The notes under the pieces were generated by a model. It did no database searches and was not told where the DNA came from. It saw only the letters and a list, made by a program, of their open reading frames with translations. Shown one piece after another: positions 24,401 through 61,923 of a stretch of 64,000 nt of DNA. The stretch comes from Oopsacas minuta. Taxonomy: Eukaryota; Animalia; Porifera. Position 1 is the stretch's first letter, and each line of letters opens with the position of its first letter. A program made the translations under genes and the position numbers. The DNA is taken from positions 496,001-560,000 of the forward strand of contig JAKMXF010000110.1 in assembly GCA_024704765.1 (NCBI GenBank), read 5' to 3'.

Positions 24401-25867
24401 CCCTGATCTAGAGATCCCTGCTTTCCATAGAGATACACTTCCGGTTTTGACACTGTATTACAATTTCGTTGGGTTGTAGGGAAGTTGAATCAGTTAGAAG
24501 CAAAGTTAACAAACTTCGAATCTTACGAAGAACAGAAGCTAGAATTGAAACATTTACAGAATAAATATAAAGAACTGCAATCTACACATATTCAGTCTAA
24601 TTCAGCTTATAACGAACAAATCACTGCATTGGATTTCCAAATTTCGTCTCAAAAGATTGAATTGGAAGATATGAAAGCTAAATATTTTAATTCTCAATCT
24701 CAGATGTCTATTTTACAAAATGAACTTGATGAACTGAAAAATAAATTCTCTGAAACAGAAAGTGAATTGGTTTTAAAGAGAAACACTCTAAATTCCTGTC
24801 AAGTTGAAATTGAAAGTTGTAAGAATGAAATTTCTCAGTTGAAGGAGAGAAATACGTCAGCTTTTTCTAGCAGTGCTGTAGACTTCGAAAAGTTATCAAG
24901 AGAAAACTCAGAACTATCAAAACAGTTCTCTTTATTGCAGGATGAAAATGAAACACTCCGTGACACAGTACTACGATTCACTGAACAGAAATTAGCCCTA
25001 TTTAACCGAGCTGATGAACTTGAACAAGAATTAGAGAAGTTATTCTTAGCTAAATGGATAGAAGATTTGAATATCAGAAGTTGCGTACTGTGTCGTAGAA
25101 GTTTCTCGAATTCTCTTAGAAAGCATCATTGTAGACTATGTGGGAAAGTTCTCTGTAATGAGTGCAGTCGAGAAAAGGTCTTAACTCCAACTGGGAGAGA
25201 TACTGTACGTTGTTGTGTCGTATGCGCTGATTTCAGAACTCGGTTTCTAGCAAATGCACACAAATCGAAAGACATTGTCAATAACAATACTACGTCACAA
25301 TTAGGCTATAAAAAACAATCTAGTCGTGATTCATTCCTATCAATAACTAGCGTGGGAGAGATGCAAGAAGTTAATATCTCACAAAGTATGGAGTCTAACT
25401 ACACTAGGTCTAGCCTATCACGATCTAGTTTCGATCACAAATCAACAGGCTCTAACTATCTATCAATGTTAGATGACGTACGTGTTAACTCAATCAATAG
25501 CGACGCACCATATGAGTGTTTAGTCGGTGATTATTCTGAGATAATCGTACATCCAAAACGGGCACATTGTGAGGACATAATCGTATCTTCCGGAATGACA
25601 ATAGTCTGGGAGTTCGTAACAGAACGTCCAATACAGTTTAGATTGACTTTTAGGCCCAGTGCAATTATAGGAGTAGACTGCAAGGAGTATGACGTCATTC
25701 CCTTCACCAGCTATGGCTCCACTAACAAAGAACTTCCACACGTAGGACACTATGCTGTAGAGAAGGCCGGTGTATATCGATTAGTGTTCAGCAATGAAAC
25801 TAGCATTCTACAATCCAGGAAAATTTCTTATAAAGTTAAGCTGACAAACACACACAAGTATACGTAA
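21472..25867 (+). CDS. FYCO1: RUN - coiled-coil - FYVE - GOLD domain protein
   Basis: RUN-domain exons KDYWNFL, LETPLGKGRALIRWAL, LQEIQFHLPSHGHDLDSHWPT match the FYCO1 N-terminus. Several coiled-coil exons at 23250-24300. Last exon (~24481-25867) has a FYVE finger (WIED..C..C..RKHHCRLCG..C..CS..RCC..C) and a GOLD domain (IVWEF..YRLVFSNETSILQSRKISYKV). Start ATG 21472 is tentative; an upstream exon near 20977-21052 is possible. Confidence 0.88.
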
Positions 25868-31566: not shown

Positions 31567-32035
31567 CAAAAATGAACTGATTTGTATATTATGGCTTTAG
31601 TATTCTTTTACATTAAATCAGGTCTTCAGTGAGCTATTGCATTTAATTAGTGAAGTGGGGATACCGCTCGAACCTATGCTAGAACTCAAGAATAATTGTG
31701 AATTTCCTGAATTTTAGGACAATCTAGGTGACAATTAACTTTCATAAACTGATGAAATGAATTATTCAATAATTAACCAATTTTTCCCAGTTTTTAACAA
31801 GTATTTTGAAAGATTGGTAGATATCGAAAAATGAACTTCGTACTTAGTGACTCTCATTTGGCTTAGTTTTGCAAATATTTAATGTTTATTAATATATTTC
31901 ACTCGTGTTATCACACTATATATCACACAACACTATACAAACTAATTACACATACGTGTATAACTAAATAGAGCTTAGTAACTAGTAGACTACAAACTAA
32001 TAGACAAACGAGCTATAGCATCAATACAGTATGTA

Positions 32036-32704
32036 TTATACTGTAGATAAGATGAACAGAGCTATAGCAGCTAGCATCATTAGTAAACTGCTAGCTAATC
32101 CTGCTGCTGAAGAGCTGTAGCATGCATCACATGTAAACTCGGAGCAAGATTCAGGTAGTGTGAACAGAGAAAATGGAGGTTGTCCGTTAAGGTAGTTAGA
32201 TATGGTTATTACGATTACTGAACCACCAGATCCTGTATCAGCAACCGCAATACTAAATACCGTAGGCCTTCCATTAACTATTACGACACTGAGCGTGATA
32301 GGTGGGATTGTAACGGTGAATGTTCCTGGAGGAGCCTCTGTAGCGCCTTGGAAAACATCCCAAAAATTTGATGTAAGGGGTATAGGCGATTGTCCAGTCA
32401 TAGAAGCTCCATCGGTCATCGTACAATTCTGACCCGTGAATGTACCATATGTTGCGTTATCGTTCACACTTGTAATGGCAAATATATTGAAAGTTGCTCC
32501 ACTTGAAATAAAGTCAATATTTTGATATGCGAGCTCTCTTGTAGCATCGATGGCTATATCAAAACGCGGGTAAGTAATAACCGTGCCATCCGTCGCGGTA
32601 GCTACAGCAGTACCTTGCATATAAAAGCTCGGAGAGAGGTCAGGGAATTGTGCGTTTGTAGCAGCAAACATCGCGCACAAGCAAACTAATATTAGACTGT
32701 TCAT
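32036..32704 (-). CDS. Secreted, probably GPI-anchored ependymin-related (EPDR/LolA-fold-like) protein, copy A, 222 aa
   Basis: Single-exon ORF from ATG 32704. Signal peptide MNSLILVCLCAMFAATNA; beta-rich mature region with TY..GQNC and C-terminal ISNYLNGQPPFSLFTLPESC, resembling the ependymin F..P..C motif; small-residue site followed by hydrophobic tail (SSSAAGLASSLLMMLAAIALFILSTV). The ORF is solid; the family assignment is pattern recognition only. Confidence 0.6.
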   Translation of the reverse strand: MNSLILVCLCAMFAATNAQFPDLSPSFYMQGTAVATATDGTVITYPRFDIAIDATRELAYQNIDFISSGATFNIFAITSVNDNATYGTFTGQNCTMTDGASMTGQSPIPLTSNFWDVFQGATEAPPGTFTVTIPPITLSVVIVNGRPTVFSIAVADTGSGGSVIVITISNYLNGQPPFSLFTLPESCSEFTCDACYSSSAAGLASSLLMMLAAIALFILSTV

Positions 32705-33111
32705 GATTCTATCTAGAAATAATACTAACATTATTTATATTATTGTGTACAATACAATATATTATTGTCTTAGAAATTATAGAAGTGTTAGGTTAATGAT
32801 AAATGAATTTGATTCATCTCATTTATACTTCATCGCTTTACCTATGTGAATGTACCAACTTTCATAATTTTGAGAATTCTGATTCTTGAGTATTATATAA
32901 CAAAAAGGCGTTCCTGATGATCAGAGTAACATAGTTAAGTAATATATCTGTTTAATTAACTCCCATTTATTCGCCACCTGCTAGTTATCTAATATCTTTA
33001 CTCAGTTGTAAGTTATGTAGTTTATTGATTTACACAAAGCTGAACAAATATATTTATGTTCTTTTCTTTCCCTACCGTGTACGTCTTAAGCTGAGTACGT
33101 AGTACCTGGTA

Positions 33112-33279
33112 CAGTGAAACCTCGTTAATACGAATTTCCGGTTAAGACGAACAGAGTTTTACACAATTTTAGTTCGTACAATGTGCATTCAATTGTTTTT
33201 ACTCCGATTAATACGTACTCCGGATAAGGAGTACAAATCTCGACGGTCCCTTGGTGTACGTATTAACGAGGTTCTACTG
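33112..33279. mobile_element. MITE family C (TIR CAGTRRAACCTCGTTAATACG, TA target)
   Basis: About 21-bp TIRs with two mismatches, flanked by TA. Related copies at 7204-7338, 26106-26166 (internally deleted), and partial copies at ~11000-11030 and ~54527-54610. Confidence 0.87.
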
Positions 33280-33351
33280 TATGTACTAATTGAGTTCTAC
33301 TGTATTTACTCTTAAGGTTCTCGTAAATCTTGCAAGCACTGTTTTCGGCCA

Positions 33352-33481
33352 GTAACCGTGTCAATCGGCCCGGTAGCTACAGCAGTAGCTTGCATATATA
33401 AGCTCGGAGAGAGGTCAGGGAATTGTGTGTTTGTTTCAGAAAACAGCAAACTAATACTAGACTGTTCATGATTCTATCTAG
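33352..33481 (-). pseudogene. Decayed 5' fragment of a third ependymin-like gene copy
   Basis: Near-identical to the first ~130 nt of the 32704 and 35467 genes (gctcggagagaggtcagggaattg..agactgttcatgattctatctag). It has an internal deletion in the signal-peptide region and lacks the rest of the CDS. Confidence 0.85.
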
Positions 33482-33956
33482 CAATACTACTAAGATTATT
33501 TATTATCAGCAAAAGTATATTTTAAGTTATTTTGGAAAGATTCGATTTGTCTTAATAATATTTCATATTTGAGTTTACTCTGAATGTATTCAACTTAATA
33601 ATGTATGAATACGTATTTCTTTGTCTTGAGCTATCTGTATCAGTTATCAGGAGGGAAAGCCCATTAAAAATTATATTAAATATTAATGTGATTCAAAAGA
33701 TCGAATTTTCCATTTTCCGCAATTACCTACTGACTGTATTTTGTGTTTATAGGCTAGCTTATACGATAGGGAATTTGTGTTATGTCAGTAGTTTTAGGAT
33801 AATCTAGGATAATTAACTATTCATGAATTGACGAAATGAATTAATCAATAATGAACCAATTTTCCCCGGATTTGAATAAATATCGAAAAATGAACTTCGT
33901 ACTTAGTAACTCTCTTTTGGCTTAGTTTTTGCAGAATAATTACGATTATTAATATA

Positions 33957-34660
33957 CTAGCCGCAACGCCGCCTTCTGGGCGGCTTTTCTGCTAGTTCCT
34001 CCGGAATGCTTTTTCGGGCCTTTGGCCCTCATGATTCTCTTTTGGCGTTTTCGAATGCTACGCGGTCACATGTATTATCAGCTCTTAGTGAACAATCAAA
34101 AAACCTATTACATTGCTATGCGGCATTCGTTTAAGTGTGTTGTAATGTGATGCTACAACATTACATTAAGCCAATTCTTCAAGTGCAGTTATTTATTTTA
34201 GGTGAGGTATTAGTACTATTTATACTAAAGTACTTTATTAGCCTTTTAAGATAGTTCCTGTGGAATGCTTTGTGAAGGGTCGTGGAGTAATGCGGACAAA
34301 GTTGGGTATCACTTTCTCCACATTACTCCACGGGATCAATAACCTGTGAATAGTAACTATTGTAATTGGTAGAATCTGATTGGACCAAATTCCCAGACAT
34401 GTTCATAATATAAGGAAGGAATCTGACTGGCCAACGTTGACCAATCAGATTCCTCTGAAAATGCATTGATTTATATGGGCGAGGTGTGAAAAATTCACAT
34501 ATCTTGTCCAAAAATGGTTCAATTCGAAAAATATTTCTTATTTGGAAAGATTGAGTACTACTTAGTCGACACACAAAATTTGGTTCGAATCGGTCCAGGC
34601 ATCTCTGAGATAACGCGTGGACACACATACATACACTTTGTTTTATATATATATATATAT
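33957..34660 (-). mobile_element. Non-autonomous Helitron/Helentron-like element, 704 bp
   Basis: Absent from the paralogous flank at ~31890 (empty site aatata|tttcactcg) and inserted between A and T with no TSD. On the - strand it ends CTAG, preceded by a GC hairpin (gccgcc-cagaa-ggcggc). The other end has (TA)n and tgtatgtatgtgtgtcc..ggaccgattcgaaccaaattt. Confidence 0.8.
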
Positions 34661-34798
34661 TTTCACTCGTGTTATCACACTATATATCACACAACACTAT
34701 ACAAACTAACTACTAATACGTGTATAACTAAAGAGAGCTAGTAACTAGTAGACTACAAACTAATAGACAAACGAGCTATAGCATCAATACAGTATGTA

Positions 34799-35467
34799 TT
34801 ATACTGTAGATAAGATGAACAGAGCTATAGCAGCTAGCATCATTAGTAAACTGCTAGCTAATCCTGCTGCTGAAGAGCTGTAGCATGCATCACAGGTAAA
34901 CTCGGAGCAGGATTCAGGTAGTGTGAACAGAGAAAATGGAGGTTGTCCGTTAAGGTAGTTAGATATGGTTATTACGGTTACTATACCACCAAATCCTGTA
35001 TCAGCAACCGCAATAGTAAATACCGTAGGCCTTCCATTAACTATTACGACACTGAGCGTGATAGGTGGGTTTGCAACGGTGAATGTTCCTGGAGGAGCCT
35101 CTGTAGCGTTTTCGAAAGTATCCCAAAAATTTGATGTAAGGGGTATAGGCGATTGTCCAGTCATAGAAGCTCCATCGGTCATCGTACAATTCTGACCCGT
35201 CAATGTAGAGTATGTTGCGTTATCGCTTTCACTTGTAATGGAAAATGCATTGAAAGTTGTTCCATTGAATATAAAGTCAGAATTTATATATGCGAGCTCT
35301 CTTGTAGCATCGATGGCTATATCAAACCGCGGGGAAGTAATAACCGTGCCATCCGTCGTGGTATCTACAGCAGTACCTTGCATATAAAAGCTCGGAGAGA
35401 GGTCAGGGAATTGTGCGTTTGTAGCAGCAAACATCGCGCACAAGCAAACTAATATTAGACTGTTCAT
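34799..35467 (-). CDS. Secreted, probably GPI-anchored ependymin-related protein, copy B, 222 aa
   Basis: Intact single-exon paralogue of 32036-32704, differing at 23 of 222 residues by my alignment; signal peptide and C-terminal tail identical. Confidence 0.6.
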   Translation of the reverse strand: MNSLILVCLCAMFAATNAQFPDLSPSFYMQGTAVDTTTDGTVITSPRFDIAIDATRELAYINSDFIFNGTTFNAFSITSESDNATYSTLTGQNCTMTDGASMTGQSPIPLTSNFWDTFENATEAPPGTFTVANPPITLSVVIVNGRPTVFTIAVADTGFGGIVTVITISNYLNGQPPFSLFTLPESCSEFTCDACYSSSAAGLASSLLMMLAAIALFILSTV

Positions 35468-36927: not shown

Positions 36928-39159
36928 TTAATAAACTCGAATCATTGCGTCATTCTGAGTGACTAAAATTAAGTGCCCCATATTTGAAATCATCATGAAA
37001 TCTGGCTCAAAATCAATCTTCCCTCTCGTTCGGACGCTGTCTAGCGACATATCTAGAACATAGATATATCCATTTTGATACAGGTAGACATTGTCAAAGT
37101 GGTCGATGGAAATTAGTGTCTTCGAACTCTTGGGTTTTGTTGGGGCAGTATTTCCAACCGGAATCGTGAGGTTAATCGGCCTCGTCCCTGGATTATTTTT
37201 TCGTAGGGTCCCTGAACGTTCTAGAGGTTGTCTCGTGGGTAGAGGAACTTTCGAAGAACTGTGGACCCTTGCTGGCCCATCAGCTCTTGAGTCCAAGAAT
37301 TTGAACTCTTTGAGTTCTTCCCCTTGTTCAGTGAAACGCTTTATCACAGGTTTATTGTCAAAGACATAGTAAATATCTCCAAAGGAATTGCTTGCTATTT
37401 GGAGATTCGTGTAAGGATCATAAACTATTCTTTGGGGAGCTTCTGGAGTCGCACGCTTCGCTGGTTGTGATATGGTTATAAATCCGCTCATAAAATCAGA
37501 ACTCAGGTCTTGGGAGCTTCCAAAAGTGTCCTGCTTCGTTGTGACTGGCGTAGTCGGCATAGGGGTTGTTTTGATCACTGGATAAAGTTCAAAGGAATGT
37601 TCCAACTTACTATCAGAAGTGTATATCTCCACCTGATGAGGTTCTTTATTATATACAATGAATCTCTCTCCTTTCCCTGTAATTACATTGAAAGGGTCTG
37701 ACATAGGAGAGCCTGACTCTGAATTCCCTGACACAGCACTTTTAACTTTGCCATCATACATTGCTTGCAGCATTTTCTTGTTTCTGTCTACAATTAATAC
37801 AATGCCATCTGGGGTAGCGTAAAAGTGTGATATAGTTGTTTTGTCATCCAGGGCATTCATAGGCTCAAGCCATTTGTGTTTCTTTAATGGTTTAAAACAG
37901 CTGTTGAGTCGTAGGATCATATTAGCTTGACTGTTCTTATCTTCCTTATCATCATGGAGTAGTACCTGCATGCCTCCATTTGATGTCTTGACTATTCCCG
38001 CAAGTTTTATATTATTCGATAATTTCAATTTGGAAATCAGATCAATCGTGCATCTCGGGGTTTCAAAGCCAAGCGGGAAGCGAAAATTGAACTTTCCCAT
38101 GCGTAGAGGGTCATTTACAAACTGGCTGTCTTGCTTGAATTGGAATTCAATTTTGTTTTGGTATGTGGTAATTATGGACCGTGTCCGTTCAAACGTGTCC
38201 ATTTTGTTACAAAGCGCCACAGCTGGAGGGAAAAGATGAGTGCCTGGTAACTCGTTAAGGAAAAATGACGTCATTTCTAATAAACGCTTTGATTCTTTAA
38301 TGAACTTTTCGTGTGACTCCATTGCATCTTCTATTTCAATTTTTCTATTCGCGAAAACAGTCTTTATTGTATTGTTAAGCTTATTGTGCCGCGTTTTTAA
38401 CTGCTCAATATAGGTGTCAAAATGGCTATCTATACTTTTCAACAATTCATCTTCCTGTCTAGAAATCCCTTTCAGAATCTCACAAAGCCTTTTGCTCTCA
38501 GAAAGTAGTTCTTTAACTTTCAAAGCTTGTTCTTTTTGTTTATCACTGACTATTTGTCTTCTTCCATTAAAACTGTCTAATATTTCATTTACATAACATT
38601 TATTTCTTGCATGTCCCTCATTCGTGCATTCAATACACAGCACTTCATTACATCTATAGCAGTATAGTTGTATTTGTTTCTCAGAATGTTGTCTACACAT
38701 ATTGCGTGTGTTCTCAGGGATTAGCTTGAATATATTGTCATAATCGTCGAATGCTTCTAGTTTGAATAGTTTGTGTTCTTGTTTCGAGGATTTTGCGTGT
38801 GTATTAGCATCATGTTGACACATAATCATTTTGCATTCTCGACAGTAGATCGAAGCTTTTGCTTTCTTACACAAATCACACATAGAGCTTCCTATTTTAA
38901 TGTTCCCCATTAGCGTTTTAACATTGGCTAGATCTTCGAAACTTCTATTACCATAGTGTTGAGGCATTCCGTTTTCTTCTAGCTCAAAAGCTTCTTTACA
39001 AACGACACATTTTGGGTCACTACTCCCACTCATGTTTTTAATACATTCAAAGCAAAATGTATGTAGGCAGTTTAGGATATATGGATTGTGATAGGATTTG
39101 TGACAGCTCCCACATTCTCCTATGTCAAACAAATGATATTGGCCCAATTTATCGGACAT
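36928..39159 (-). CDS. TRIM E3 ligase: RING - B-box1 - B-box2 - coiled coil - divergent NHL-like propeller, single exon, 743 aa
   Basis: C3HC4 RING CGSC..LNCLHTFCFEC..CVVC; B-box1 CDLC..YCRECKMIMCQHD; B-box2 CRQH..YCYRCNEVLCIEC..H; helical coiled region; C-terminal IASNSFGDIYYV and ISIDHFDNVY NHL-like blades. Confidence 0.85.
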   Translation of the reverse strand: MSDKLGQYHLFDIGECGSCHKSYHNPYILNCLHTFCFECIKNMSGSSDPKCVVCKEAFELEENGMPQHYGNRSFEDLANVKTLMGNIKIGSSMCDLCKKAKASIYCRECKMIMCQHDANTHAKSSKQEHKLFKLEAFDDYDNIFKLIPENTRNMCRQHSEKQIQLYCYRCNEVLCIECTNEGHARNKCYVNEILDSFNGRRQIVSDKQKEQALKVKELLSESKRLCEILKGISRQEDELLKSIDSHFDTYIEQLKTRHNKLNNTIKTVFANRKIEIEDAMESHEKFIKESKRLLEMTSFFLNELPGTHLFPPAVALCNKMDTFERTRSIITTYQNKIEFQFKQDSQFVNDPLRMGKFNFRFPLGFETPRCTIDLISKLKLSNNIKLAGIVKTSNGGMQVLLHDDKEDKNSQANMILRLNSCFKPLKKHKWLEPMNALDDKTTISHFYATPDGIVLIVDRNKKMLQAMYDGKVKSAVSGNSESGSPMSDPFNVITGKGERFIVYNKEPHQVEIYTSDSKLEHSFELYPVIKTTPMPTTPVTTKQDTFGSSQDLSSDFMSGFITISQPAKRATPEAPQRIVYDPYTNLQIASNSFGDIYYVFDNKPVIKRFTEQGEELKEFKFLDSRADGPARVHSSSKVPLPTRQPLERSGTLRKNNPGTRPINLTIPVGNTAPTKPKSSKTLISIDHFDNVYLYQNGYIYVLDMSLDSVRTRGKIDFEPDFMMISNMGHLILVTQNDAMIRVY

Positions 39160-46791: not shown

Positions 46792-49005
46792 TTATTGAAC
46801 GCTAAAACGGTGTAGAGAACCTTTGCTAGAGAGAATGTAAGCTTCTCCGAAGGGGTTAACTGAGAAGGAAACTGGTTCGATCTTTTCCCCTAGTTTGTCT
46901 TTCTTTATGAATTCGTGGTTGGCATCAAAAGTTAGGATGTGTTTCTTCCTGCAAATGTAAATATTGTCGAGGTTGTCTGTTGTTATCAAAGTCCGCTCTT
47001 CAAGCCTTGATTTAGGAGTAATTCTACCTGAATTTGTTCGAGTAAGAGGGGATGAAACTCGCTTTATACTGTTTGACCGACTTAAACTAGGACTTAGATT
47101 ACCGGAATTGCTTCTAACCATGCCAGTGCCCATTGCATGATACGTAGAATTATCCAAATGCCTTTGGTAGTCAACGGTATCTACCCTTTTACCATCGATG
47201 CTAAATGCTGAGAAGGTTGGTTCGTTTTCGTGGGCGACCAAGATTTGGTTCTTGGAGTTTGTTGCTAGTGATTGAGTCTGTATGTCAGAGGCTTTCTTAG
47301 ATGATGAGAAGGGCGAACAGGTTCTTGGACGTATTGTTCCATCGGTAGGGAAGACATCAGGTGAATTCGTACCGCTTAAACGTGACCCGGGTCTAGAGTT
47401 CGGTCTGGAGCCACCACCTGAACAACTGCTACTTGTTGAATTATTCCTCTTCCTAGGTACTTGTTCATCACGGACTTGTATTACTCTTATACATTCAAAT
47501 TCTTTGTTTAGAATATGGACTTGGCCATGCTGTTTATCATACGTAACTACATTGTCACCATCATTGCACCTTTTCACCTCACAAATGCTTGATGGATCAG
47601 TAATGCAATTATCTTCTTCATTAGCGGGAGTTTTCGAATTATTATGGGGGATATTGGCATTCTTTCGTCGCAAATCATTGACTGATAGATTAGTAGGCCG
47701 CACTTTGGAAAGAGTTGATGAAATGTGATCGGATGTTGAATTTGTCTGAGGAATTAATGACAATTCGATTTTTGGCAGTTTGCTTTCTTGAGTTGTCGGC
47801 GATTGTATTAAATTTAAGTTTGCCTTCTTCACGCTTAGCATTAGATCGTCGTTCTTAGTAATTCCAATATCAGATGCAACGATAATTTCGGAAGATTTAG
47901 TAAAATCTGGGACCCCAACTCGGGAAATCTTTCCAATATTTTCGATTTTTGCTTCTAGTTCGTTCACTTCGTTCGACTCCATTTCAAACTTAATTTTCTG
48001 AGCTTTTAGCTCTCTCTTAGGAATGAGTTCTTTCAGAGAATTTACACGGGAATTTATCGTATTTGAGTTTGCAAAGAAGTAATTGGTTGGGAATAGCTTC
48101 GACGATGCGTTATAATAGGTCTCTACATCAGCTAGTTTCGTTTTGAACGTTTCTATGGTTTCCAAATACTTTTCAAAGGCAATTTCCTGTGCAGTGAAAT
48201 GCTTGTTTATTTGACTTTCAAAATATTTCCTTCTTCCTTCGATCATTTCCTGGATATTTTGGAACCCGCTATCTAATTCATTTAGAGCCCTTGTCCTCGA
48301 ATTTTTAAGTTGCTCTAACTCTTGATGAAGGTTAGATTTCATATTTTCAACTATTCCACTGTTTTCCTTTGCTTTCTCGAAAGTCTCTGTTAGATTTTCA
48401 AGCAAAGCACCTTCAGATTCGGCAAGTATTTTCGTGCCGTGGTTAATATGTTCAAAACGTGCGCACCATTCACAACATGCTATATCACATTTAGGACAAT
48501 ACACAGTTACTTCAGTGTTGTTATGCTTGCTGCAGTATATAACAGGGTTGGGTGGTAGAAGTGATTTCAATGGGCTGAATGTGACATCATCAAATGATTT
48601 GACTTCATGCGTAACGTGGAATCGAATGTGAGCTTTTTTGTCGAATTCGCAGATGAATTGCTGGCACTGTATACAGTATGCAATACCATTTCCAACTTCT
48701 CCATCGATTTCCTGGTAAGTGCAATTATGGCAGGCAATCGTTTCGGGATGAAATGCTATTTGCTCTAAAGCTTTTTGGACTGTCGTTATTGCCTGATAAG
48801 GAAGGTGGTTGGGCAATTCATTGATCGCTTCCCTCGTAAGCTGGTGAACTTCTTGGCAATTGTTGCATGTTATTGTATTTGTTTTTGAATGCAGATTGCT
48901 CTGCAGGCATTCACCACAAAATACGTGCAGGCAGGACAACGATTTTGGAGATTGGTATGCTTTTTTGCATATGGAACAAATATTTTCTTCAAAATTATAT
49001 GACAT
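46792..49005 (-). CDS. TRIM E3 ligase: RING - B-box1 - B-box2 - coiled coil - divergent NHL-like propeller, single exon, 737 aa
   Basis: RING CSIC..LSCLHVFCGEC..CNNC; B-box1 CHNC..YCIQCQQFICEFD; B-box2 CSKH..YCPKCDIACCEWC..H; coiled region; LATNSKNQILVA and ITTDNLDNIY blades. Confidence 0.85.
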   Translation of the reverse strand: MSYNFEENICSICKKAYQSPKSLSCLHVFCGECLQSNLHSKTNTITCNNCQEVHQLTREAINELPNHLPYQAITTVQKALEQIAFHPETIACHNCTYQEIDGEVGNGIAYCIQCQQFICEFDKKAHIRFHVTHEVKSFDDVTFSPLKSLLPPNPVIYCSKHNNTEVTVYCPKCDIACCEWCARFEHINHGTKILAESEGALLENLTETFEKAKENSGIVENMKSNLHQELEQLKNSRTRALNELDSGFQNIQEMIEGRRKYFESQINKHFTAQEIAFEKYLETIETFKTKLADVETYYNASSKLFPTNYFFANSNTINSRVNSLKELIPKRELKAQKIKFEMESNEVNELEAKIENIGKISRVGVPDFTKSSEIIVASDIGITKNDDLMLSVKKANLNLIQSPTTQESKLPKIELSLIPQTNSTSDHISSTLSKVRPTNLSVNDLRRKNANIPHNNSKTPANEEDNCITDPSSICEVKRCNDGDNVVTYDKQHGQVHILNKEFECIRVIQVRDEQVPRKRNNSTSSSCSGGGSRPNSRPGSRLSGTNSPDVFPTDGTIRPRTCSPFSSSKKASDIQTQSLATNSKNQILVAHENEPTFSAFSIDGKRVDTVDYQRHLDNSTYHAMGTGMVRSNSGNLSPSLSRSNSIKRVSSPLTRTNSGRITPKSRLEERTLITTDNLDNIYICRKKHILTFDANHEFIKKDKLGEKIEPVSFSVNPFGEAYILSSKGSLHRFSVQ

Positions 49006-54837: not shown

Positions 54838-57162
54838 TTAACTATACACATTCATTTCTCCCTTATCAGACATGATGTAAACATGACCTGATTTGTTTAC
54901 TACCAAAGACATTGGTTCGAAGCCGAGTTTAGAAGCTCCACTGAATTTATGCTGGGGGTCGAACATGAGAATCCAGTTTTTCTGTATCACATAGATATTA
55001 TCAAGGACGTCAATTGTTATCAACGTTTTAGAAGGGGAATGGAAAGTTGTAGGGATAATAGTTTCCGATATTTTTGAGGCCTTGGGGGTAAGGGATCTTT
55101 TTTGTGGGGTGCTTGTGGGTTGTCTACTGGCACCAATTGTTGTTGTTGTTGTTGGTTTTCTGGATAACACCTTTTCTTTCACTCCTGGCTCCACCTCAGA
55201 GATGATAGTTTTCTTTTCATGTGAATGATCTTCCACCAGTCTTACCCGATCTTGGAAATTTATTTCTCCAATTTCCTTCCCTTCCAAGGAATATACCGTT
55301 ATTAATGCTCTATCTTCACTAACTACGAATATATTATCACGCGAATTGATAGCAATAGTAATGGATCCCAGTACAAATGGCTCTGGAGTTTTAGGTTCCC
55401 TTTCGGCTGCCACGTTTGGCTTCTTTGCCCTTGCGCCAGCTTTCTGACCGCTCTCAGTTCGTGAGGAAACACTCTGCGGCGATTCTTTCCTCTTCAAGGA
55501 TAGAGGCTTGAGTGCAAAGCGTTTATCGACGAGGAAATCTTTGTCAAGAAGTACCAGTTCATTCATGGACTTATTATGTACAACCAGACGAGAGTTTGAA
55601 GTAAGAGCAATACTGGAAGGATCCTGAATACTGTTAATATCGTCAGCTGAAATACACCGTATAGTCCTCTTCAAGGTATCGTCACGGATAATTATATGTT
55701 TAAGCCCTCGCTCAAGAATGTAAATATAGTTATCAATTCCGATCAATATTTGGGTTGTATTCTGCATAACACATGGATATGTAATCATGTCAATGGAATT
55801 GAACTGCGAATCGAATATTTGACATGTATCTTTCCCATATTTATTATTAGCCTCATTTTCGGTATATTGCGACGAAAACATGTAAAGCCTATCATTGTCC
55901 GCCTGTGCTATTCCTTGTAGATCGATTACACTTGCTTCCGTTTCCTTTTTATCAGGGATATTAGTCGGGAGTAGTTCGCTTCTACTTATATGCTTAATCG
56001 GGCTCTCAAAGCTAGTTTTGTGTAGATACTTTATCCAACCTATATTATTAAGTTGTTCATCTACTTCGCTTTCATTTCCTTTATCGTATTCTATAGCTTT
56101 TATTTGGAAAGGGATTTTAGGCATGGACGACTTAAGGGAATTGAATCTTTTCGTTATAATTGAAGTTAATTCGATTTTGTAGTTATTAGGATATTCTCTA
56201 TAGTTAGCAACGAAATCGGCTAGCGAGCTAATTTTTTTAAGAAGACTACTTTGCTTCTGGCATGCGGTATATAGCTGCTTTCGGACGGAAATATACAAAG
56301 AGTTTACATGCTGAATGAGGGTCTCACGACGCTTCTCAAGGATTTCTGCTAGGCTCTCGAAATGCTTATTGATTCTTTCAATTGTTACCTGTTGTTTTGC
56401 CATCATTTGACGCACTTGGTTGTCATATTTATCGTTTTCCTGAAGCATTGCGATACCGGGTTTACCGAGCTCATCCATTTTCTGATCTACGCTTTCGCAG
56501 AAAAGATTAAGAGCAGCCTTCAGGAACGTTTTTTTATGCGTGTTGTGATCTCCGAACCCGCAATCGTCACAAATTTGATCATCACACTCTACGCAATAGT
56601 ATTTAATATCATGTGTGGGATGTGTCTTACATTTCACGGTTGCCAGATCTGAAAGCAGTTTTTCCATATGGGTTTCATTCAACAGCCGGTCTATGGTAAC
56701 TGATCGATGAGTCGGTTTGAACCTATCATGAGCTACACTATCATGTCGACACATAATCTCCTTACAGTCGCAGCAATAAAATACAGCTGGAGTGTTATCC
56801 TTACCAAATGAACAATTAACGCAAGCGACTTCCTTTGGACCGCTGCGTAACTCGTCACGTAATTTTTTCAACTGGATGAGGTCAACTAATGGGTAGTGAG
56901 TCATAAGCTCGCTAACTTTGAATGTTAACGGTGTTTCCTCATGACATGCATAGCATTCGATCACATTTTGTCTCATCATTGTACTCTCAATACAATTCTG
57001 GCAGAAATAATGCATACAGGGTAATATCTTCGGATTTGAATAAAGTTGGTTACATTTTGAACAGGTAAGATTTAGCGATGTGGACTGTGCGCCTTCGAGT
57101 GATACCCGTTTATGGAAGTCTTGCGCGTCGATGGACGAATCAAAGCTGATATTTGCAGTCAT
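54838..57162 (-). CDS. TRIM E3 ligase: RING - B-box1 - B-box2 - coiled coil - divergent NHL-like propeller, single exon, ~774 aa
   Basis: First ATG at 57162 (the supplied ORF starts at TTG). RING CSKC..LPCMHYFCQNC..CYAC; B-box1 CVNC..YCCDCKEIMCRHD; B-box2 CKTH..YCVECDDQICDDC..H; DPSSIALTS, IAINSRDNIFV and ITIDVLDNIY blades. Confidence 0.85.
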   Translation of the reverse strand: MTANISFDSSIDAQDFHKRVSLEGAQSTSLNLTCSKCNQLYSNPKILPCMHYFCQNCIESTMMRQNVIECYACHEETPLTFKVSELMTHYPLVDLIQLKKLRDELRSGPKEVACVNCSFGKDNTPAVFYCCDCKEIMCRHDSVAHDRFKPTHRSVTIDRLLNETHMEKLLSDLATVKCKTHPTHDIKYYCVECDDQICDDCGFGDHNTHKKTFLKAALNLFCESVDQKMDELGKPGIAMLQENDKYDNQVRQMMAKQQVTIERINKHFESLAEILEKRRETLIQHVNSLYISVRKQLYTACQKQSSLLKKISSLADFVANYREYPNNYKIELTSIITKRFNSLKSSMPKIPFQIKAIEYDKGNESEVDEQLNNIGWIKYLHKTSFESPIKHISRSELLPTNIPDKKETEASVIDLQGIAQADNDRLYMFSSQYTENEANNKYGKDTCQIFDSQFNSIDMITYPCVMQNTTQILIGIDNYIYILERGLKHIIIRDDTLKRTIRCISADDINSIQDPSSIALTSNSRLVVHNKSMNELVLLDKDFLVDKRFALKPLSLKRKESPQSVSSRTESGQKAGARAKKPNVAAEREPKTPEPFVLGSITIAINSRDNIFVVSEDRALITVYSLEGKEIGEINFQDRVRLVEDHSHEKKTIISEVEPGVKEKVLSRKPTTTTTIGASRQPTSTPQKRSLTPKASKISETIIPTTFHSPSKTLITIDVLDNIYVIQKNWILMFDPQHKFSGASKLGFEPMSLVVNKSGHVYIMSDKGEMNVYS

Positions 57163-57639
57163 TTTCCACAATTAGCAATAGTATATATATATTTTCCTTT
57201 AGTTCTAATTTGCTATTTATATGATAACCTGACCCTATTACAGACAAGTATTAAGATATCATTGCTAGGGTTTAGTGACTATATATTAATGTAATTAATA
57301 TATGAACTCGTGTTTGCAATGTGGCAATATTGGATGGCACCATTTTGTACTGCAAGAATCATCTAGAAATTATTATTGATGCTAATTGCTAATGAATAAT
57401 GTTTGATAATTGAATTAACGTATTTTAATTCGATTTATTTGCTATTGGAATGCATTCAAAATATCCGTTCGGGTATAGCTTAAGTATATATATAAAATAG
57501 ATTAATTTAATTAACCCTTATGAAAGGGGTCGCAACCTGGAAAGCTTCAAAATCGTGAGATTCGTCAAGAATCTCACGATTCTATCGTTTATGTAATTAA
57601 GTATTAGTTTCAGTGATAGGACCAGGAATTCTGCAATAT

Positions 57640-58686
57640 TTATAAACCCGAAATCGTGAGAGTTGAGAGCCCTGCTATTGGTATGAAAGATGTACGACGC
57701 TCTATCCGTCCGTGATGTCCTGAGAAATCTACCAGACCGATTGATTTAAGAATTGGCACATAGATGTGCACCAAAAAGAATTCGTCTAATTCTGTTAGTA
57801 CAAATATCTTCTCATTATGGGCATTGATATCGATTGGATATTTAAGTTTGTCTTCTCCAAAACGGTTGGTATAAACCAGATCGGAATTGAAGAGTTCAAT
57901 ACTGTTTCTCCCAGAATTGCAGACATACACTGATTGCAAGTAAACACAAATTCCACGAGGATAAAAATCAAATTCGATATTGGATGAATTGGTATCGTTT
58001 AGATATTCTCCCGATTTTACGAACTTAAAAATAGAGTCTTGGTCGGAAACGTAAACGAATCCTTCGCTTAGAGATATGCCATACGGGCTAACTAATCTTT
58101 GTTCACCGAAGCTTTTCAATAACTCTCCTTCTTGAGAGAAAATATGAACCAAACCTTTGTAATAATCAGTGACGTAGAGTAGATTAGTTTCTTTGTCAAC
58201 AGTTAGATCGAATCCTGTTATATTATCTCCTTCATTTGTAATTCTTTTCATAGCAACAGGTTCTTTCCTCTTACCAAACTTAGCAACGCATTCTCTCAAA
58301 TGGAATGTATTCATGCAGTACTCAAGCTCTATAAGGTTACTGACAAACTTCACTTCACAAATAGGATCTAATTTCTCTTGCTCTTTCTTCAACTGTCTTA
58401 TCTTGTCATCCCATAAACTCACCACATACTGCTTGTCCTCTGCTATAGCATTCTGAGTTATAACTTCATTCGTCGCTCTTTTAACCATCTCGATTTGTTC
58501 CATGGCTTTTAGAATATCAAAATGCTTCTGATCAAGTTCTTTCAATTTACTTACTTCCCCGAGAAGAAGGTGTTTCCTCGTGTCTAAAATCTTGTAGCAT
58601 TCTAGGAAAGTTCTTTCTATTTCTAGTAAGAGAGCATCGAATCTATCTTCCCCTCCCACATCCAAACCTGTATCTGGAATAGCCAT
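57640..58686 (-). pseudogene. Coiled-coil + NHL-repeat protein without RING/B-box, 3'-truncated by a repeat insertion (ORF still open)
   Basis: ATG 58686. N-terminal helical region, then only about 3-4 NHL repeats (LTVDKETNLLYVTD, PYGISLSEGFVYVSD, PRGICVYLQSVYVCN, YPIDINAH). The last ~40 codons come from a repeat also present in a CPT1 intron at ~9485-9570. It could be an expressed truncated gene rather than a pseudogene. Confidence 0.65.
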
Positions 58687-58909
58687 TATGGTCAGATATG
58701 CTTTCAACAATTATTACTACTATATTTACTACAAGTCTACAATCATAAAATATTATCAACACCGTGGATCACATCTATATGCCTTAGTGTATGGTAACCA
58801 CTGTCCAGTTTCTTCACCTAGGAAAACGCGTGATTCTATTTTCATCATTTTTTGGCGCTATTTTAGTTAGATTGCTTCACAATGTATGTTATTATTACAT
58901 AGCTTTCAG

Positions 58910-59898: not shown

Positions 59899-61923
59899 TC
59901 AGATAGATCCATACACCAATGCATTATTAGATTCTGTACAGAAATAAACGTTGTTCAGATTGTCACAAGCCATTGAAATAGGCTCTTCTATGTCAGCTGC
60001 TGGGTATATTGCTACTTCTTTATAATGACTGTTGTATACGGCGAATACGGAGTTGTAGTAAATGTACACATTGTCAGAACAGTCTACGTAAAGCAATGCT
60101 TTCTCCCTCAACAATGGGGTATCGTATCTTCTATATACTGTCCGTATTTTTGTTCTCGGTTTGTAGATCTCATCGATCATATCGTGGAGAATTTGGTACT
60201 CTTCAGTTGGTATATCCTTTCCTTCGAAATCACAAATCCTGAACCAAGGTTCAAGATGCAGTAACAGTAAAATATGGTTGTTAGAGTTGACTGCCATATT
60301 TACGATCGGATTAATTTTATTCGGCAATCTTGGGTATAACTCTATGTCCATTTGTTCCACAATGAATGCGGCATCCAATTGCAGCGCAGAGGTATGTGCA
60401 TTGAAGGCTAGTACCACAGAATTGTAGCCCGAAGCAACTAATAGTTGATCTTCACTCGAAAACGTAATAAAATTCGGTTCGACTAAGCCTGATTTCTTAT
60501 AGTTTCCTTTTATAGTCATGCTGTATAAGAAATCTATATTGAAAATGTATATATTCGATTCTTTGATGTCTGCGATGGCAATCTTCCCCTTTTTAGAAAC
60601 AGCCATAGAGCATTTCCCGGAGAAACGCACTGTTGCCGTGCCCGCATCTTTTTCTGTAAAACTTTTAAGCTCTGTATTCCCTAAATTATATGGAAATACT
60701 GAATCTAGGCAATATCGTGACGAAGAGCCTACTGGTGTGCGTAGGACGAACGCTTGGCCTCTGTCATTAACCGCCACGCTATTTGGTTTCATAGGATCGT
60801 CTTTGGAATTTCCAAACAGAAGCCGTGGAGGTCGAGTGAAAGAAAGTGAGGATCGACCCATTTTTGAGATAGAACCATACTTCTCTGGGTTGGTGGTGAT
60901 CTCACGCAATTTTCCGACTACAAATTGTATCTTTTTCGGCTCGGTAGCCTCATCAGGGTGTAGTTCCCTATCCAGCTGTTGGATCCGTTCTCGAATTGGT
61001 GACATCACTTCTAATATATAAGTAACGGGGTATTCGTAAAGATACGGACGTGTAAGTACCTTGAATTCATTGAGTTTATCGATTAGCCCTTCTTGTCTTG
61101 CCATTAGATCTTTCATATAGTTTTGATGATGTTTAGATAGTTCTCTCACTTGTTCCATAAGGTTATCACGATGTGTTTCTAGTGCAGATATCTTCGAATT
61201 GAATTCGTTTTCTATGTTAGTTACCAAATTCTTTTCATCTTCATACATTTCCAACAACTTCTGTTCATAATATTTCTTGATTTCTATCTCATTTTCCTTT
61301 CCTCTTGTCATTTTACCGATATCTCTGGCTAAGTCATCTTTCATGTCGCTGGCAGTATAATCCAAATCTCGAATCATGTGACCGCGATGTTCACCGTCTC
61401 TACATTCCCTACAAAGGTACTCTCCATCAATTTTGCAACAGACTTCAGTTTCGTTGCCATGTGCTGTACACTTGAATATGGGATCCATTGGCTTGATTAC
61501 AAGTTCGTCCAAATGGTCGCTGTCTTCTAGACGTACTTGTACATGCTTCTTACTTCGCATCATCGTTATTTGATTTTGATGAGATTCATAATCGGCCCGA
61601 CACATCAACGCTCTACAGTCGAGGCAGAAATAAATTGCATTTTTGGGTGGATCGTCAAAACAATCGTCGCAGAATAGTTCATCTATTCCTTTCTGTGCGA
61701 GTTCAAGGATTTTATTGTATGAATTAATAATGTTTGCGTGGATTGGACTCTCTGGGATAGAATTAATGTCATTCGGTATTTTTTCCGTGCATAACTTATC
61801 AGGGCATTTTGGACTGTGACGAACACAATTACGACAAAATGAATGCAAACATGGTAGGAGTACCGGATCTTGTAGAATATCCTTGCAACAAAGACAAATA
61901 TAGTCTTGTTTTTTTTGTGCCAT
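59899..61923 (-). CDS. TRIM E3 ligase: RING - B-box1 - B-box2 - coiled coil - NHL-like propeller, single exon, 674 aa
   Basis: RING CLCC..LPCLHSFCRNC..CPDKLC; B-box1 CDDC..FCLDCRALMCRAD; B-box2 CTAH..LCREC..EHRGH; NHL-like KPNSVAVNDRGQAFV, MAVSKKGKIAIAD, EPNFITFSSEDQLLVA, MAVNSNNHILL. Confidence 0.85.
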   Translation of the reverse strand: MAQKKQDYICLCCKDILQDPVLLPCLHSFCRNCVRHSPKCPDKLCTEKIPNDINSIPESPIHANIINSYNKILELAQKGIDELFCDDCFDDPPKNAIYFCLDCRALMCRADYESHQNQITMMRSKKHVQVRLEDSDHLDELVIKPMDPIFKCTAHGNETEVCCKIDGEYLCRECRDGEHRGHMIRDLDYTASDMKDDLARDIGKMTRGKENEIEIKKYYEQKLLEMYEDEKNLVTNIENEFNSKISALETHRDNLMEQVRELSKHHQNYMKDLMARQEGLIDKLNEFKVLTRPYLYEYPVTYILEVMSPIRERIQQLDRELHPDEATEPKKIQFVVGKLREITTNPEKYGSISKMGRSSLSFTRPPRLLFGNSKDDPMKPNSVAVNDRGQAFVLRTPVGSSSRYCLDSVFPYNLGNTELKSFTEKDAGTATVRFSGKCSMAVSKKGKIAIADIKESNIYIFNIDFLYSMTIKGNYKKSGLVEPNFITFSSEDQLLVASGYNSVVLAFNAHTSALQLDAAFIVEQMDIELYPRLPNKINPIVNMAVNSNNHILLLLHLEPWFRICDFEGKDIPTEEYQILHDMIDEIYKPRTKIRTVYRRYDTPLLREKALLYVDCSDNVYIYYNSVFAVYNSHYKEVAIYPAADIEEPISMACDNLNNVYFCTESNNALVYGSI

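Follow-up and report, generated by a model that had tools for sequence, protein, structure and literature searches.

A tandem pair of intronless genes in a 64,000-nt stretch of the Oopsacas minuta contig JAKMXF010000110.1 (hereafter the window, to which all positions given without a contig label refer) encodes predicted surface proteins with an ependymin/LolA-type fold and a C-terminal glycosylphosphatidylinositol (GPI)-type signal, and the family to which they belong represents a new variant of the ependymin/LolA superfamily, predicted to be tethered to the membrane and apparently confined to glass sponges. An initial annotation of the window, whose G+C content is 31-38%, had interpreted the two genes (copies A and B) as a young duplication with a strong excess of amino acid replacements, brought about by diversifying selection on a ligand-binding surface. 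Our analysis suggests that the two are probably an old tandem pair of functional genes which gene conversion has homogenised, and that positive selection on them is possible.

The open reading frames (ORFs) and their translations bear out the two tandem 669-nt coding sequences (CDSs) at the positions first annotated (Table 1), and the encoded proteins are 90% identical. A codon-by-codon count gave 37 nucleotide differences between the CDSs: 23 codons carry an amino acid change and account for 32 of the differing nucleotides, with nine of these codons changed at two bases, and five codons (47, 66, 86, 186, and 191) differ only silently. The tally in the initial annotation was thereby exactly reproduced, as was its observation that the signal peptide and the last ~58 residues are identical, since all replacements fall within residues 35-164 and the proteins do not differ in residues 1-34 and 165-222. 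At the DNA level, the block shared by the two copies spans only 843 nt and is 94.6% identical by alignment and self-BLAST. It begins 16 nt ahead of the ATG and extends ~158 nt beyond the stop codon; upstream of it, the flanks of A and B show no relationship. A distance of 2763 nt on a single contig separates the copies, with a transposon, a relic of a third copy, and unrelated sequence in between. The public gene models of A and B (211 aa) begin at Met12 and cut off most of the signal peptide; the Met1 start of the 222-aa ORF is kept in A, B, and the relic copy. Upstream of this start, copy A alone has a further in-frame ATG, at 32731.

The strong excess of replacements that had been read from these counts did not hold up when compared to neutral expectation, as the 505 replacement and 161 silent sites would yield a ratio of ~21:7 versus the 23:5 observed. 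The Nei-Gojobori method returned a whole-gene ratio of replacement to silent rates (omega) of 1.52 (Fisher p 0.32), and pairwise maximum likelihood estimates under the GY94 codon model with three frequency models ranged from 1.7 to 1.85 (likelihood ratio test (LRT) p 0.15-0.21). For residues 35-164, pairwise GY94 gave an omega of 2.7-3.0 (p 0.02-0.05), a nominal significance which is inflated, given that this region was delimited post hoc by the replacements themselves. Double changes within one codon had also been offered as a sign of selection, and these are better described as tandem multi-base events. All nine within-codon double changes are tandem, the adjacent differing pairs between A and B number 10 compared to 2-3 expected by permutation (p < 0.001), and one such pair lies in the 3' untranslated region (UTR). 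At least two of the tandem events include a silent base (GTG to GAA at codon 80, and TAT GGT to TAC TCT at codons 86-87), and such silent changes are not called for by selection at the amino acid level. A tandem double-change parameter was well supported when added to the codon model (LRT 22.1, p ~1e-6), and with it omega was 1.10 for the whole gene (p 0.85), 2.2 for the post hoc region of residues 35-164 (p 0.22), and 1.2 for the gene without the divergent island described below (p 0.78). The ten tandem double-base differences therefore raised the whole-gene omega, and the claim of diversifying selection is not sustained under this model. Among single-base differences alone, 13 are replacements and 4 are silent, as expected under neutrality.

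The two ends of the protein behave as expected of functional genes. Residues 1-34 and 165-222 contain no replacements at 211 sites versus two silent differences at 65 sites; the local silent rate predicts ~6.5 replacements, and the probability of finding none is ~0.002, indicating selection on each of the copies. Purifying selection continues to act on the signal peptide, the cysteine-rich tail, and the anchor signal, and the rate in the central part of the protein is roughly neutral or slightly above neutral. The replacements occupy positions free to vary in the family as a whole, V80 and N81 excepted. When outgroups were used to polarise the 23 changes, only these two were informative, copy B being derived at both and having lost the conserved V-N of the family's S-V-N-D motif. 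The relic third copy agrees with the state of copy A at codons 35 and 37. Other paralogue pairs were uninformative, as their silent sites are saturated (silent divergence, dS, from 0.8 to >2, with a rough long-term dN/dS of 0.3-0.8).

Differences between the copies are concentrated in an island. A maximum chi-square scan assigned 19 of the 37 differences to 87 nt covering codons 61-89 (permutation p 0.0005), where the proportions of differing silent and replacement sites (pS and pN) are 0.19 and 0.23, compared to 0.021 and 0.034 in the rest of the CDS. Silent divergence is thus ninefold higher inside the island (Fisher p 0.004), and third-position differences occur at 5 of 29 codons there versus 3 of 193 outside (p 0.001). 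Selection on the protein would be expected to raise replacements locally over a uniform silent divergence; this pattern was not found in the pair, and the ninefold silent divergence in the densest patch of differences points to a mosaic history. The island's divergence of ~22% matches that of the old flank downstream of the genes, described next. No donor for the island was found in the 61,460,524-base assembly (365 contigs), which was used for all genome searches, either by a DNA search or by matching character states at the 37 sites against 10 paralogues, where the best agreement was 10/19 and near random.

Beyond the shared block, the downstream flanks of A and B are only 77% identical by self-BLAST, and this segment is present in just these two copies genome-wide. 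A flank divergence of ~23% indicates that the duplication is old, so that the description of the pair as young is half right: it suits the closely similar gene block and fails for the flank. A dispersed repeat of 684 bp sits exactly where block and flank meet. The genome contains at least 70 matches to it, including three full-length copies of 95-96% identity that have identical ends, and the repeat is likely a recently active non-autonomous mobile element. A 101-aa ORF inside it (34323-34628) is probably spurious. What is left of the third copy is the upstream motif, the ATG, and the first ~40 codons, whose signal-peptide part has lost 10 nt and with them the reading frame; its identity is 84% to A and 79% to B. 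Just downstream of this relic (~33100-33350), the sequence has no relation to the gene and could be a further insertion.

We propose that an old tandem duplication belongs to a decaying array, in which a relic copy and a transposon insertion have been retained, and that later gene conversion would have re-homogenised the transcribed block to ~3% divergence, halting at the transposon. The 87-nt island may have escaped conversion, may have re-acquired its divergence, or may derive from a donor since lost. Surface-protein arrays of the major histocompatibility complex (MHC) type, which evolve by gene conversion and birth-and-death, offer a parallel in that their gene bodies are homogenised relative to the flanks, that divergent islands occur inside converted sequence, and that relics and pseudogenes are found within the array. 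The present pair differs from such arrays in that no omega significantly above 1 was obtained, no donor was identified, and a role in recognition is conjectural.

Several observations weigh against the history proposed above. Every point estimate of omega is at least 1 (1.1-1.85 for the whole gene and 2.2-3.0 for residues 35-164), which is unusual for intact genes and compatible with some positive selection, and a multi-nucleotide model can absorb a genuine selective signal. Once the island and the termini are set aside, 15 differences are replacements and one is silent (ratio 5.2). Few silent differences underlie the contrast seen for the island (3.5 of 18.3 sites), most of them within tandem events, and the island's origin is reconstructed indirectly, as no donor exists in the assembly. 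Copy B has gained two N-glycosylation sequons, one of them through two substitutions, which looks adaptive. Additionally, both GPI anchoring and ligand binding are predictions from sequence and fold. Much of this would be accommodated if the tandem duplication were recent and diversifying selection acted on a ligand-binding surface of the two proteins, with the island and the clusters at residues 117-120, 132-133, and 159-164 as selected specificity determinants, and with conversion excluded because homogenised variants are disfavoured. We regard this account as unlikely, yet it deserves to be taken seriously: omega exceeds 1 in every model, the centre reaches nominal significance under the standard model, and both the 15:1 ratio and the new sequons of copy B would follow. 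In the predicted secondary structure, replacements also occur two residues apart within beta strands (i, i+2: 35/37, 61/63, 74/76, 87/89, and 162/164), which would put them on one face of the sheet, and the changes are evenly spread over both copies. Nevertheless, whole-gene tests gave p values of 0.15-0.32, the post hoc centre loses its significance once tandem changes are modelled, and silent divergence in the island has risen along with replacement divergence, including silent bases altered within tandem events. The flanks mark the pair as old, and the changed positions are the family's unconstrained ones. Positive selection on the pair is therefore possible, and the present data cannot demonstrate it.

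An omega near 1 could also mean that duplication relaxed the constraint on one of the copies, which is no longer needed and is on its way to becoming a pseudogene, its replacements being without functional meaning. The array is decaying, with its relic and transposon, many family members elsewhere are fragmentary or stop-bearing, and copy B has lost the conserved V-N, all of which fits such drift. Both ORFs are nevertheless intact, the terminal branches of the two copies are symmetric, and the lack of replacements in the termini is not what drift would leave, making this explanation improbable. Finally, the O. minuta assembly is a scaffolded, gap-filled draft (PMC10280926), which raises the question of whether the two copies are uncollapsed haplotypes or a mis-joined repeat. 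We find an artefact of this kind hardly credible, as the copies are nearly 3 kb apart on the same contig, share only the short gene block with unrelated sequence upstream, where haplotigs would share long flanks, and are separated by the relic copy and the transposon. On this structural evidence, the haplotype concern raised in the initial annotation gives way to a true tandem pair.

The proteins themselves follow a simple plan. In copy A, a signal peptide (residues 1-18) is followed by the LolA/ependymin-fold domain (~19-197) and a hydrophobic GPI-type tail (203-222). The signal peptide was called by heuristics, from a hydrophobic precursor N-terminus which ends in T-N-A ahead of Q19. There are two N-x-S/T sequons in copy A and four in copy B, the extra two being at N68 and N120. 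With a 222-aa precursor, a signal peptide, and sequons, the proteins heuristically resemble the ~200-aa secreted glycoproteins typical of ependymin-related proteins (EPDRs). The family alignment shows the same arrangement throughout, with a signal peptide leading into a mature N-terminus of the type Q-F-P-x-L-S-x-S-F, conserved S-x-N-D, W115, G127, and P147, and four invariant cysteines (C94, C187, C192, and C195 in precursor numbering), including a C-x4-C-x2-C cluster. After a stretch of small residues (S-S-S-A-A-G), a 20-residue tail with a mean Kyte-Doolittle hydropathy of 2.33 reaches the C-terminus. This tail has no charged residue in A, B, and three other members and almost none family-wide, and by inspection it is kept in family members with an intact C-terminus. 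Small residues followed by a hydrophobic run to the C-terminus form the classical shape of a GPI-attachment signal. Genes for GPI transamidase are present in the genome, namely Gpi16/PIG-T (three exons, E values down to 5e-36) and Gaa1/GPAA1 (E 2.5e-83). Judging from the sequence, the C-terminal signal is most likely exchanged for a GPI anchor, in agreement with the GPI-type surface protein first proposed. Each ORF would then give a small surface glycoprotein with a cleaved signal peptide, one curved beta-sheet domain of ~175 residues, and a C-terminal GPI-type signal. By analogy with EPDR1, LolA, LprG, and EPD-BCP1, the domain would most likely hold a hydrophobic ligand, such as a lipid, an acyl chain, or a carotenoid, at the outer face of the membrane.

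We generated a predicted structure for the domain with AlphaFold2, using a 13-sequence family alignment as input, and obtained an all-beta model (predicted local distance difference test (pLDDT) 83.4, predicted template modelling score (pTM) 0.73). Foldseek retrieved EPD-BCP1 (8i34) first, followed by EPDR1, VioE, LolA, LolB, and LprG, with E values of 1e-6 to 1e-4 and a probability of 1.00. Alignments by VIA-align gave a Z-score of 14.8 for EPD-BCP1 (root-mean-square deviation 2.8 A over 153 residues), 13.5 for VioE, 13.2 for human EPDR1, and 12.9 for LolA, with human, mouse, and frog EPDR1 at 12.3-13.2. In all, 98 chains had a Z-score of at least 8, 49 of the 50 matches listed belong to the LolA/LolB-like superfamily, and model residues 12-191 were covered. 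The nearest ESM Atlas clusters include ependymin-like ones at 0.95. With the model and all three comparisons in agreement, an ependymin/LolA-type fold for the domain is supported at the level of predicted structure, as the initial annotation had surmised.

At the sequence level, a search of the family profile against the PDB retrieved a single match, a weak one to Helicobacter pylori LolA (E 0.002-0.004, strands 7-10). Copies A and B gave no match in a Pfam scan, and none to PF00811 even at E <= 10, no match to PF00811 was obtained at E <= 1 for 13 members or for 28 members, and a six-frame search of the genome with PF00811 returned nothing, while the same tool does detect both Gpi16 and Gaa1. 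These scans give no support to placing the proteins among the ependymins by sequence. McDougall et al. define EPDRs by a cysteine signature which includes an N-terminal Cys paired with C148; three cysteines, at alignment positions 23, 94, and 186, are ultra-conserved, and a further one is found at 148 or 107 (PMC6280359). The Oopsacas proteins depart from this profile, with no Cys near the mature N-terminus and no equivalent of 148, and resemble it only in the potential pairing of a mid-sheet cysteine with the C-terminal tail. Calling them ependymin-like is thus appropriate for the fold, while strict membership of the ependymin family is not supported.

The best structural match, EPD-BCP1 from Haliclona sp. 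(PDB 8i34; PMC10470211), is likewise a sponge protein of ~200 aa with a signal peptide, N-glycosylation, and an 11-stranded curved antiparallel sheet. Sequence identity to it is only 16%, and EPD-BCP1 itself is matched by PF00811 and possesses all four canonical ependymin cysteines. The protein is secreted in soluble form as a heterodimer with carotenoids bound at the dimer interface (PMC10470211), whereas the Oopsacas proteins have no PF00811 match, a different set of cysteines, and a C-terminal membrane-anchor signal. A similar comparison can be made to EPDR1/MERP (PF00811; PDB 6e7o and 6jld; PMC6280359, PMC6363788), which is alike in fold, size, signal peptide, and glycosylation sequons, and the mid-sheet C94 of the Oopsacas proteins could tie down the C-terminal tail, as proposed for the C94-C186 pair of EPDRs. 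EPDRs have undergone lineage-specific expansions in sponges (PMC6280359, PMC6363788). They are soluble lysosomal or secreted proteins, in contrast to the GPI-type signal found here, and in place of the position-23 Cys and C148, which are missing, the Oopsacas family has its C-x4-C-x2-C cluster. No GPI-tethered EPDR or ependymin was found in the papers searched. The bacterial proteins LolA, LolB, and LprG, along with VioE, have the same fold (Z 9-13.5), and the bacterial carriers hold acyl chains in a hydrophobic cavity. They are periplasmic or lipoprotein-anchored and have no disulfides; the Oopsacas proteins, unlike them, are eukaryotic, predicted to be glycosylated and stabilised by cysteines, and equipped with a GPI-type signal, and do not match Pfam LolA models.

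A word-based search of 5.8 billion proteins returned only the two gene models of the window itself. A six-frame search of the genome found a dozen paralogues at 31-43% identity, including a cluster on contig C335, and a profile search of the genome found 12-13 intact domains and at least 10 fragments or stop-bearing copies. The latter include C335:17995-18645, C335:20517-21107, C122:780881-781291, C350:164158-164657, and C322:56779-56976, and indicate birth-and-death turnover of the family. Some members have altered architectures. One on contig C66 (C66:188761-189888) has two tandem ependymin-fold domains in one ORF, homologues in other assemblies have up to three or four domains, and in the member at C335:15987-17255 a long Thr-rich mucin-like repeat and Q-rich repeats follow the domain and replace the anchor signal. 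A weak, broken profile match with two TAA stops at C110:646910-647263 (E 7e-6), ~87 kb beyond the window, may represent a more divergent subfamily. An HMMER profile search of 1.84 billion representatives retrieved 47 clusters at E <= 0.001, ~10 of them from this genome and ~35 from other ENA assemblies at 30-54% identity. On the tree, members from this genome and foreign members interleave, indicating that several subfamilies predate the species split, and A and B are sisters (support 100/99) with terminal branches of 0.069 and 0.085. The family is thus narrowly distributed, appears to be restricted to glass sponges, and is undescribed, as the initial annotation had suggested.

The ependymin/LolA fold is known from soluble carriers of lipids or pigments. 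A membrane-tethered branch, missed by standard domain models, would be a new architecture in the superfamily, and hexactinellids would gain a candidate set of surface lipid-binding proteins. It is conceivable, though in our view a long shot, that glass sponges carry Pfam-invisible, GPI-tethered receptors of this fold, whose hypervariable strands are kept distinct, despite conversion, by selection for specificity towards lipids or microbial lipoproteins. Were this so, a surface system for pattern recognition or self/non-self discrimination would have been built on a lipid-carrier fold in a largely syncytial animal. We would also like to note that a tally of replacement versus silent codons made by hand can mimic positive selection where multi-base mutation and mosaic conversion have operated, and that flank identity and silent-site heterogeneity expose such false signals.

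Table 1. Features of the gene pair and its surroundings in the window.
Feature	Position	Strand	Basis or remark
Copy A CDS	32036-32704	minus	669 nt, 222 aa + stop, intronless; ORF translation
Copy B CDS	34799-35467	minus	669 nt, 222 aa + stop, intronless; ORF translation
Divergent island, copy A	32438-32524	minus	codons 61-89, CDS nt 181-267
Divergent island, copy B	35201-35287	minus	codons 61-89
3' untranslated block, copy A	31878-32035	minus	alignment, self-BLAST
3' untranslated block, copy B	34641-34798	minus	counterpart of 31878-32035; its end is the exact transposon insertion point
Downstream flank, copy A	31712-31896	minus	counterpart of 33792-33956
Old downstream flank, copy B	33792-33956	minus	self-BLAST
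Dispersed repeat, 684 bp, likely non-autonomous mobile element	33957-34640	minus	directly after copy B 3' block
Relic 5' fragment, third copy	33353-33503	minus	upstream motif, ATG, first ~40 codons
TRIM-like ORFs and NHL ORF	36928-39159, 46792-49005, 54838-57171, 59899-61923, 57640-58710	minus	RING/B-box or NHL domains

Between 36.9 and 61.9 kb, the window contains four TRIM-like ORFs with RING and B-box domains and one ORF with an NHL repeat, all on the minus strand. The four TRIM-like ORFs are long, intronless, and mutually 22-26% identical. TRIM-like genes occur at ~seven further places in the genome, none of which is near another member of the ependymin-fold family, and this neighbourhood thus gives no hint of function. 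A functional link to the TRIM cluster, beside which the initial annotation had placed the pair, was accordingly rejected as a feature of the family. A FYVE zinc finger (E 6e-14) is found in a 460-aa ORF on the plus strand, at positions 24485-25864.

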